Positions 36,995 to 39,900 of a DNA stretch of 64,000 nucleotides are shown here, one piece after another. The translations under genes and the position numbers were made by a program. The notes under the pieces are model-generated. The model did not search any database and was not told where the DNA came from. It saw only the letters and a program-made list of their open reading frames with translations. The stretch's first letter is position 1, and each line of letters opens with the position of its first letter. Origin of the DNA: Monocercomonoides exilis PA203 (lineage: Eukaryota; Protista; Preaxostyla); contig LSRY02000029.1 in NCBI GenBank assembly GCA_001643675.2, positions 434,001-498,000 on the forward strand. Direction: 5' to 3'.

Positions 36995-39900
36995 TTAATG
37001 GTGCCCAATAGGAATCTGATTGGCATGTGCCGTGATAGACGGAGAAAGCGTATACGGTGGAGAAGGCGAAGGCATCGGAACAGCAGGTGTGGGTGTGGGA
37101 TACGGCGAGGGCGATGCAGATGGTATTGAAGAATCCCACGAAGCAGCTGGCACAGGCCTCACAGATGAATGGTGGCGAGATGAGTGCCGTGGAGGAGACA
37201 CAGAGCCAGACGAAGAATGAGCAGGGCGGCTGGAGTGTGTGCGATGATGGCTGGTGTGGTGGCGGTAGTGACTCGATCTGCTTCTTCTGTCTCTGCTGCG
37301 ACTTCTGTTTCTGCTTCTGCTCCGACTCCGGCTTTTGGCAGGGCTTCTTGAGTCTCTTGTCCAGCTATTTCTTCTTTCTTGGCTGTATCCTCTGCTTCTT
37401 CCATGGCGAGATTCATTCTTCCTTCCTCTGCTGTAGCTTCGACTTCTGCTCCTGCTCCTATTTCTGCTCCGACTTCTGTCTCTGCTTTTGCTTCTGCTCC
37501 GATCAGGTGCTTTGCTTCTGCTGATTCCTGATGGCGGAGATCGCGTGCGATGACGAGAAACAGGGCTGTGTGAATTCCATCCATCAGATTGTGCCGGACT
37601 GACACTTCTGCGTGTGGCAGGTGCTGCGCTTGACTTCGCCTGCCAGTCAGATGCAGATGATGAAGAGGAAGAAGATGAAGAAGAGGATGAATATGACGAT
37701 GGCGCACCAAAGCCATATGCGCCAGAGGCAGAGGAACGTGCAGCATACGGGTCTCTGCTTCCATAAGAAGAAGGACCCATTCCACCATCAGACCCTGGGG
37801 GACGATAAATTTCATAGCTGTTTGGACCTGTGGCATAACTTGATCTGTATCCTCCTCTTCCTCCACCACTGCTATATCTTCCTCGCCCTCCTCCTCCACC
37901 TCCAAATCCTGAGCGCAATGATGCATATTCCCTCAGCCTCTGAGGAACCTGCTGTCCTGATTGTGAAATGACTTCAACAAGATCTTTCGCAAGACGTGCA
38001 TCTTCATCTGTGAAGAATGTCATGGATGTACCAGTCGATTTACCTCTATACACATTCATAGGTAGACGCATTGAAAGACAAATAGAGAATTAATGTTAAA
38101 TATTGATGATAATAAAAATGAAAGTTAAGGTTATTAATAAGTATTGTTAAAAACACAAACCTCGCAGTCCTACCAATACGATGTACATAATCCTCAATGT
38201 TTTTAGGTACATCGTAGTTAATCACATACTTAATATCACTCACATCTAAAGAGAATAAAAGATCATTGAAATGGAAAATAAAAAAAAAAAATACAAGTTA
38301 ACAAATTAATGAAAATAAATAAATAAAATAAAATAAAGCGTTCCCGCAAAAAATATGTAATTGATTTAAAAAAAAAATAAAATGTATGAAAATTAATCAG
38401 TTCAAATTCCACAGAGAAAGCAAGCTGATGAAAAGCATTCACAAAAATAATGAATTGCAAAACAAGTAATAAAAGCGATATTAAATATAAACTCAATGGA
38501 AGTAATGCAGAATTATGTGACACAAAAAAAGCTTGCCATATTACGTGACCAAGATCAGACCTTTTTTTCTCTTCTCATCGAATTAACAGTGAAAAAAAGT
38601 GCAATCAAGGAAAGATCATTGGCCATCGTCAGCAAGCCTGCAAGAATTCACGCTGCATTAGCTTTCACATTGGGTGTGCCTTTACTCTTTAAGCAATATA
38701 ATAAAACTATTTATTCATTATTAATGCTCATTTTTACACTATTCAATTCCAACACCCTATTTTCATTTCACACCAATCCCTCTCGATGCCACATCTGTGG
38801 CAATGCAGATGGATGACCGGCCCGATTTAAACTCAGCCATCACCCAGTCACGCTCCCCCTGAGACTTGTCTCCGTGGATAGACAGCGCAGGGAAGCCATT
38901 CGTACGCAGCAGCGTCGTCAGCTCGTCAGCCATCCTCTTTGTGTCTGTGAATATCAGGATACGCCCATCCCGCATGTTCTCCTCTAGAAAACTCACCAGC
39001 TTGTGCTGCTTCTCCATGATCGAGCAGAACGTAAACAGCTGAGTCACTCGTGCATTCGCACGTATCTCGATACTTCCGATATGGAAACGAACAGTCGTTT
39101 TTTGGTTTAAGAAATCAAAAGCCAGTTGCCTAATATCTTTAGGCCATGTGGCAGACCACATAAGAGTTTGCCTGTCTGGCCGAATTTGACTAACAATTTT
39201 GCGAAGCTGCTCTTCAAATCCCATTTCAAGTAATCTATCTGCCTCGTCAATAACAAGATACGTCACACGCTTCAGATTTGTGCATTGTGCGGAAATAAGA
39301 TCAATCAATCGTCCAGGTGTAGCAATAACTACTTCTACACCTTCTCTCAATTGTCGCATCTGAGGAACCTTTGAAACACCACCGTACAGACATACAGTTC
39401 TCACTCTTCCACAATATTTTCTCATCTCTGTTTCAATCTGTACTGCCAGCTCACGAGTAGGAGCCAAAACAAGCATAATTGGTCCATCTCCTCGACGAAT
39501 TGGAGGTTGAGCCAAAAGATGAGTGATTCCAGGAAGAGCAAATGCCAGTGTCTTTCCAGATCCTGTCTCTGCAATTCCAATAAGATCCCTTCCAGATAAA
39601 GCTGTTGGCCATGAAATCTGCTGGATAAGAGTTGGCTCTTTAAAGCCAGAGCGTGCAATGGCGTTCATGATATCTGAAGAAAAATTTGCATGTTCAAATT
39701 TCATGCAAGGTTTTGGAATGTTTTCTCCAATAGCAGTGACCTGATGCTCTCTGTAAAACCATTGGACATCATTTTCTGATAGGCGCGCAGTTTCAGGATG
39801 CTCAACATAAAAATCCTTTCTAACTGGAGGTGCATCAGAAAAATCTATATTTTGAGGAAGATTGGACCCAAGTCCGCCCATACGATCAAAACCTCCTCCA

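Follow-up and report, generated by a model that had tools for sequence, protein, structure and literature searches.

A long intron at the conserved DBP2/p68 position in the DDX5/DBP2 gene of Monocercomonoides exilis

Many RNAs are remodelled by helicases of the DDX5/Dbp2 type, and yeast, human cells and plants each keep the dose of these enzymes within tight limits by means of an intron in the helicase gene itself. Studies by Iggo et al. 1991, Barta & Iggo 1995 and Moore et al. 2011 reportedly dealt with the conserved intron of DBP2/p68. In S. pombe, the position and length of dbp2 intron 2 are conserved with S. cerevisiae and higher eukaryotes, and the intron lowers the mRNA level (Kilchert et al. 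2015, PMC4695336). Yeast Dbp2 inhibits the splicing of its own intron (PMC5393171), and human p68 controls partially spliced p68/p72 pre-mRNA (PMC1920232). In this study, we compared these systems with the 528-nucleotide (nt) first intron of a DDX5/DBP2 gene in Monocercomonoides exilis PA203, a protist that has no mitochondrion. The gene lies on the minus strand of a 64,000-nt stretch of contig LSRY02000029.1 (positions 434,001 to 498,000; assembly GCA_001643675.2), hereafter the window, whose own numbering is used below.

Two further systems involve an intron in a gene of this family. The DEAD element of the plant genes DRH1/RH46 is a single stem of 19-20 base pairs (bp) with a loop of 3-5 nt and a conserved sequence, and it occurs in land plants only (Burgardt et al., bioRxiv 10.64898/2026.01.23.701338). 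At its base the plant hairpin conceals an alternative 3' splice site, and the gene's own helicase opens the hairpin, which leads to forms with a premature termination codon (PTC) (10.64898/2026.01.23.701338). In kinetoplastids, the DBP2B intron is one of three cis-spliced introns in the lineage; it is in phase 1, has a median length of ~3350 nt, and its gene adjoins the intron-less paralogue DBP2A (PMC11613528).

The host gene and its first intron

Intron 1 spans 38773..38246 on the minus strand, and both the sequence and the RNA joints define it as a 528-nt GT..AG intron in phase 1. Its 5' end reads GTGTGA at 38773 and its 3' end CTTTAG at 38246. The upstream flank is GCA TCG AGA GGG ATT G, with its last base at 38774, and the downstream flank AT GTG AGT GAT starts at 38245. 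The Asp codon of motif V (ARGI|D) is thereby cut after its first base (G|AT). When the intron is retained, translation continues through GGT GTG AAA TGA, adding Gly-Val-Lys before a stop, and the product ends ahead of motif VI.

The RNA data are contigs from four metatranscriptome runs (X1-X4) of one study, labelled 'synthetic metagenome'; such contigs carry no level, strand or ends, and rare forms are dropped from them. A joint 38245|38774 that skips exactly 528 bases was found in all four runs, and its ends, CT..AC on the plus strand, are GT..AG on the gene strand. Intron 1 is real and is removed from most of the steady-state mRNA. A preliminary description, made from the letters of the window, had already given the coordinates, the length, the phase and the stop upon retention, and the sequence and the RNA joints agree with each of these.

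Judged by its sequence, which includes RGG-rich tails, the host gene is the DDX5/DBP2 orthologue of M. exilis. The spliced gene model was searched exon by exon rather than as a joined protein. Exon 1 (38774..40142, minus strand) starts with an ATG at 40142 and is covered by RNA contigs over 38774-40153. It encodes an N-terminal Gly/Ser/Tyr-rich tail, the DEAD domain (Pfam, 2.3e-47) and most of Helicase_C (1e-17), and it ends with ATDVASRGI plus a G. Its best relative of solved structure is yeast Dbp2 (8ark_A, E 1.2e-129), and human DDX17 was matched at 1.7e-127. Exon 2 (38161..38245, minus strand; 85 nt; RNA contigs 38161-38245) holds the last two bases of the Asp codon, 27 residues with motif VI, and two bases of an Arg codon. 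It matches Pfam Helicase_C positions 82-107 and was aligned to Dbp2 residues 428-451. Intron 2 (38046..38160, minus strand) is a 115-nt GT..AG intron in phase 2, and its joint from 38045 to 38161 was seen in record 8 of run X2 only. Exon 3 (36995..38045, minus strand; stop codon 36997-36995) is covered by unbroken RNA contigs from 36862 to 38044/38047 in the four runs. It encodes the last part of the helicase core, followed by an RGG box, a run of Ser and a tail of ~200 residues rich in Arg and Ser; no Pfam family was matched in this exon.

Summed over its pieces, the encoded protein has ~834 residues. Besides the organism's own model, the top database matches are named Dbp2 or DEAD-box helicase, are mostly fungal, and share ~50-62% identity. 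The protein identical at 100% is MONOS_8024 of M. exilis. This public model (399 residues) splices intron 1, starts at Met88 of the open frame and ends with RIGRTARG; it contains neither the N-terminal Gly/Ser/Tyr-rich tail nor exon 3. The RNA contigs back the longer gene.

The Arg/Ser-rich tail (36995-37560, minus strand) follows the RGG box, is covered by RNA, and resembles an SR protein with its 41 RS/SR dipeptides. An RS domain is unusual on a DDX5-type helicase. The annotated orthologue of the oxymonad Blattamonas nauphoetae also has a long tail, which is not RS-rich. A 2782-nt RNA contig of run X1 touches 37302-37321 and 37436-37456, with 1227 other letters between them. It is most likely another RS-repeat transcript and no splice form of the DDX5/DBP2 gene.

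Position and age of the intron

To compare intron sites, orthologous proteins were mapped exactly onto their own genomic DNA, with GT/GC..AG ends and a perfect translation required. An intron in the same codon and in phase 1 was found in six other species. Among fungi, it is 519 nt long in the ascomycete Neurospora intermedia (longest of 4) and 904 nt in the mucoromycote Linnemannia schmuckeri (longest of 3). The moth Phthorimaea has an intron of 799 nt, whose rank in the gene was not resolved, and the jellyfish Rhopilema one of 2973 nt (longest of 12). In the basal angiosperm Amborella, the RH20 gene carries an intron of 985 nt, fifth of 9 in length. In Blattamonas nauphoetae it is 44 nt, ordinary for a gene with introns of 29-125 nt.

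On the alignment, Dbp2 residue 424 stands opposite the end of exon 1 and Dbp2 residue 428 opposite the third residue of exon 2; the split codon thus corresponds to yeast Dbp2 Asp425. Exon 1 of S. cerevisiae DBP2, which we take to be 1273 nt long (424 codons plus one base), would agree with this. The preliminary description had placed the intron at a site shared with yeast and human. In the six species mapped, this codon and phase hold, and the position is reported as conserved in published papers; for yeast and human themselves, the intron is known to us from the literature only.

The Blattamonas protein, annotated as dbp2, shares 61-62% identity with the window gene and is closer to it than to the M. 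exilis paralogue described below. Its gene has a second intron 28 codons after the first, in phase 2, which is the site of M. exilis intron 2. Because of this shared second intron and the closer match of the protein, we consider the Blattamonas gene to be the orthologue. Among the genes mapped, the intron 2 site was found in Blattamonas only and in none of the fungal, plant or animal genes. The orthologous Blattamonas intron (L017:2181-2224) opens with the same G|GTGTG as that of M. exilis. Several annotated introns of the Blattamonas gene are 29-33 nt long, which is very short for spliceosomal introns.

The site is not filled everywhere. The phase-1 intron of motif V is absent from Phytophthora kernoviae, from one Paratrimastix DBP2 gene, from a plant WW-type helicase and from the intron-less M. 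exilis paralogue. It is also absent from Gonapodya, where a junction between residues 403 and 407 is unresolved. A different intron lies 13 nt further 3', in phase 2, in both Paratrimastix (L018:4865-5166) and the Actinidia WW-type helicase (L020:7304-7515), placed after residue eight counted downstream from the start of motif V. The Paratrimastix intron, at 302 nt, exceeds all others in its gene. This downstream phase-2 site may be a second old intron site in motif V, or it may reflect intron sliding.

A second DBP2-like gene of M. exilis, the closest paralogue, lies on contig 69 (C69:1016643-1020062, minus strand) as an open frame of 1139 residues without introns. Its best solved match is Dbp2 (5.7e-122), its Ser/Gln/Pro-rich tail is very long, and the gene could be a retrocopy. 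None of the other M. exilis DEAD-box paralogues found has an intron at the motif V site: one (L003) has an intron 12 codons further on, and three more (L004-L006) have none there.

Taken together, the intron of M. exilis is very probably orthologous to the DDX5/DBP2 intron of other eukaryotes. The alternative, that an intron was inserted independently at the same site in oxymonads and in other groups, would fit the patchy distribution, with absence in Gonapodya, Phytophthora, Paratrimastix and the M. exilis paralogue, and the use of the nearby phase-2 site in Paratrimastix and the plant WW-type helicase. We regard such convergence as extremely unlikely, since the nucleotide and the phase are identical in seven mapped species of four supergroup-level lineages. 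Furthermore, the exon flanks (TTG|AT, TAG|AT) form no uniform MAG|R proto-splice site. Intron loss is also far commoner than parallel gain in intron evolution, which argues against convergence as well. The Dollo analysis of introns builds on this difference (PMC6759080).

From the comparison of sequences, an origin of the intron at or near the last eukaryotic common ancestor (LECA) is well supported. Its presence in Amorphea, Archaeplastida and Metamonada points to this age wherever the root of eukaryotes lies. An origin near LECA had been proposed in the preliminary description, and it gains support from the site being filled in fungi, animals, the plant RH20 gene and two oxymonads. Two points count against the combined reading given below, of an old intron that still acts as a brake. 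Absence in Gonapodya, Phytophthora, the Paratrimastix gene and the M. exilis paralogue indicates that the intron has often been lost. In addition, 65 of 201 M. exilis introns (>30%) in 100 conserved genes are ancestral by the criterion of sharing with another supergroup (PMC6759080). Since so many introns of this organism are equally old, the ancient position is less remarkable than first implied.

Length, structure and possible function of the intron

We consider it about an even chance that the intron is the M. exilis copy of the old, position-conserved DDX5/DBP2 intron and still brakes helicase output, as the preliminary description had proposed. The feedback role taken separately is put forward tentatively, at slightly less than even. 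In such a brake, a transcript that retains the intron would stop after three extra codons, short of motif VI, and be eliminated through nuclear decay or nonsense-mediated decay (NMD). How fast the intron is removed would vary with the activity of the helicase on its structured middle part, as has been reported for yeast Dbp2 and human p68 and, by way of a different element, for plant DRH1. Homologues of UPF1 and UPF2 were found in the M. exilis genome, so a PTC-based brake would be feasible.

The main competing explanation is that the intron is ancient and ordinary: it would now be constitutively spliced, and its length would come from AT-rich neutral expansion with a chance hairpin, with no feedback. 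We regard this as a real possibility, at clearly less than an even chance. The mean intron length of M. exilis is 119-124 nt genome-wide, at 25-28% GC (PMC8767320, PMC6759080). Intron 1 is ~4.4 times as long as this mean, with an overall GC of 0.28, and intron 2 has 115 nt. Apart from intron 1, the introns of the DDX5/DBP2 gene and of two paralogues are roughly 115-125 nt. The statement in the preliminary description that most introns in the window are short agrees with the published mean and with these introns of roughly 115-125 nt. Five of the seven species (all but Amborella and Blattamonas) have, at the motif V site, either the longest intron of the gene or a very long one, and the intron there is also reported as long in yeasts and human. 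This recurrent great length is hard to explain without selection on the content of the intron, which argues against the ordinary-intron explanation.

The content of the intron is uneven. A GC-richer island (38530..38650, minus strand; GC 0.40), unique in the genome, folds as a single sequence into a hairpin that is long and interrupted and contains a smaller, inner one of ~50 nt. The minimum free energy (MFE) of the island is -36.6 kcal/mol (z -3.09), and none of 200 shuffles was as stable. The island ranks 32nd of 8518 GC-corrected 121-nt windows taken along both strands of the 64 kb. This unique, GC-richer and structured island counts against the ordinary-intron explanation. Metagenome contigs, scanned for exact matches to one arm of the hairpin, yielded no relative of it. 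Mmi1-type TNAAAC motifs (determinant of selective removal, DSR) number 0 in the intron vs 0.63 expected.

Several other origins of the extra sequence were considered. Intron 1 is unique in the 82-Mb genome except for its AT-rich 3' part. A repeat or transposon origin is rejected, as the only matches elsewhere in the genome are AT-rich and of low complexity. A nested gene is likewise rejected, as neither of the two mechanical open reading frames (ORFs) in the intron was matched in Pfam.

The most stable local folds of the window are those of three long inverted repeats, at 3741-3940 (arms of 85 nt, 95% complementarity), 56623-56796 (72 nt, 82%) and 62266-62430 (60 nt, 83%), and reach -64 kcal/mol at GC 0.31. 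They could be AT-rich palindromes or elements resembling miniature inverted-repeat transposable elements (MITE).

Part of the intron, 38533..38752 (strand not given), was seen as low-depth, separate RNA contigs in runs X1 and X2 only. These are record 5 of X1 (38545-38752) and record 9 of X2 (38533-38742); X3 and X4 have none. No contig of the four runs covers 38246-38532, the AT-rich part of intron 1, or intron 2. The intron contigs fit some unspliced or intron-derived RNA. That such RNA was seen for intron 1 and none for intron 2 speaks against an ordinary intron. A regulatory role is favoured by the 4.4-fold length, the unique GC-richer hairpin (z -3.09) and the immediate stop upon retention. 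The intron contigs in two of four runs, with none for intron 2, and the presence of UPF1 and UPF2 also speak in its favour.

A number of observations weigh against a regulatory role or speak for the ordinary-intron explanation. The spliced form is the dominant contig in all four RNA runs, and the contigs from the intron might simply stem from ordinary pre-mRNA or from lariats. The 3' half of the intron (280 nt) has a GC of 0.22, is of low complexity and resembles stretches at other loci, which fits neutral growth. The fold of the whole intron is not exceptional (z -1.4), and among the loci of the 64 kb, ranked by structure, the hairpin comes no higher than about seventh to tenth. Motifs of the GTNTG type and branch-like motifs are not enriched over shuffles. 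Since the orthologous intron of Blattamonas has 44 nt, neither length nor content is conserved within oxymonads. Finally, for the LECA-age introns that make up more than 30% of M. exilis introns in conserved genes, no special function is claimed.

The intron might also be kept long because it hosts a small stable RNA. A box C/D-like small nucleolar RNA (snoRNA) of ~80 nt could lie at roughly 38545-38625, where a terminal stem GGCCAA/UUGGUC surrounds AUGAUCU ... CUGA with an internal GAUGAG, and one RNA contig ends at 38545, the end of this stem. The human DDX5 intron is said to contain a microRNA (miRNA), going by the title of Moore 2011. Other retained introns host non-coding RNAs (ncRNAs), for example in kinetoplastids (PMC11613528). 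We consider this explanation very unlikely. An Rfam search of 37900-39000 on both strands gave chance-level matches only, the best being SCARNA7 at 20 bits vs a gathering threshold of 65. The putative D box CUGA and the terminal stem are present, but the C box AUGAUCU departs from RUGAUGA. Complementarity to the organism's own 18S/28S ribosomal RNA (rRNA) reaches 10 nt vs 11 at most in shuffles, the two regions that would serve as guides base-pair with one another, and the contigs reach ~130 nt upstream of the putative RNA. With a non-canonical C box and rRNA complementarity no better than that of shuffles, a C/D snoRNA was discarded as the principal explanation of the intron.

A brake of this kind could take a more specific form. 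Within the hairpin lies a hypothetical 77-nt cassette ('poison') exon (38561..38637, minus strand), bounded by an AG at 38639-38638 at the stem's base and GTCTGA at 38560 in the 3' arm. Its inclusion would shift the frame and give ATG TGA at the start of exon 2. Within the intron, GTNTG is confined to this candidate site and the true 5' splice site, a count not above chance expectation. No RNA joint in X1-X4 uses the candidate sites, and the intron contigs run colinear through both of them. A purine run at 38558-38573, at the end of this segment, is also complementary to the polypyrimidine tract at 38249-38264, which belongs to the true 3' splice site (16 nt, 88%), and purine and pyrimidine runs pair easily by chance. 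The motif V intron might be a LECA-age sensor of helicase activity, in which the hairpin (38650..38530) hides both splice sites of the 77-nt exon. We regard this as unlikely. The helicase, by unwinding its own hairpin, may then switch splicing to PTC-containing or retained forms, a logic that it would have in common with the DEAD element of land plants and the intron of yeast DBP2. If true, structure-gated self-limitation would be an ancestral property of the DDX5/DBP2 helicase family.

Comparison with known systems

A known kind of intron is now found in a new and distant lineage, and its range is broadened to a plant, a cnidarian and two oxymonads. In Neurospora, Linnemannia, the jellyfish and M. 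exilis, no intron of the gene is longer than the one at this site. With the shared site and this length taken together, an observation that reached from yeast to human becomes pan-eukaryotic. As a candidate regulatory intron retained since the last eukaryotic common ancestor, the M. exilis intron is concrete and open to test. If feedback holds in this metamonad, it would be among the oldest known post-transcriptional control circuits; if not, the intron is one more of the many ancient introns kept by M. exilis.

Intron 1 shares with other M. exilis introns of LECA age (Karnkowska et al. 2019, PMC6759080; Slamovits & Keeling 2006) the criterion for 'ancestral', being common to Amorphea and other supergroups. 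It differs from them in being ~4 times the mean length and in occupying a site at which a regulatory intron is found elsewhere. The kinetoplastid case is similar in that M. exilis also has an intron-bearing gene and an intron-less paralogue of 1139 residues. However, the DBP2B intron is described as lying outside motif V, where the helicase core gives way to the Gly-rich tail (PMC11613528).

The plant DEAD element is likewise found in a DDX5-family gene, within a long intron that carries a hairpin. In M. exilis, the hairpin has a candidate AG at its base, and a PTC would result if the 77-nt segment inside it were used. In contrast to the plant element, the M. exilis stem is longer and interrupted and contains an inner hairpin, and use of the cryptic sites was not seen in the RNA contigs. 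The motif V-region intron of the Actinidia WW-domain helicase, which we take to be DRH1/RH40-like from its WW domain, also differs in lying 13 nt further 3' in phase 2. Because shape and taxon range differ, the M. exilis hairpin stands outside the plant DEAD family; by analogy, it could work in a similar way.

Of the known systems, the DBP2/p68 intron conserved in yeasts and human comes closest. The M. exilis intron differs from it in having no Mmi1-type TNAAAC motif and shows no sequence similarity to any other intron. In both, the host is a DDX5/DBP2 gene, the intron interrupts motif V at the position aligned to Dbp2 D425, it is far longer than usual introns, and its retention truncates the protein before motif VI.

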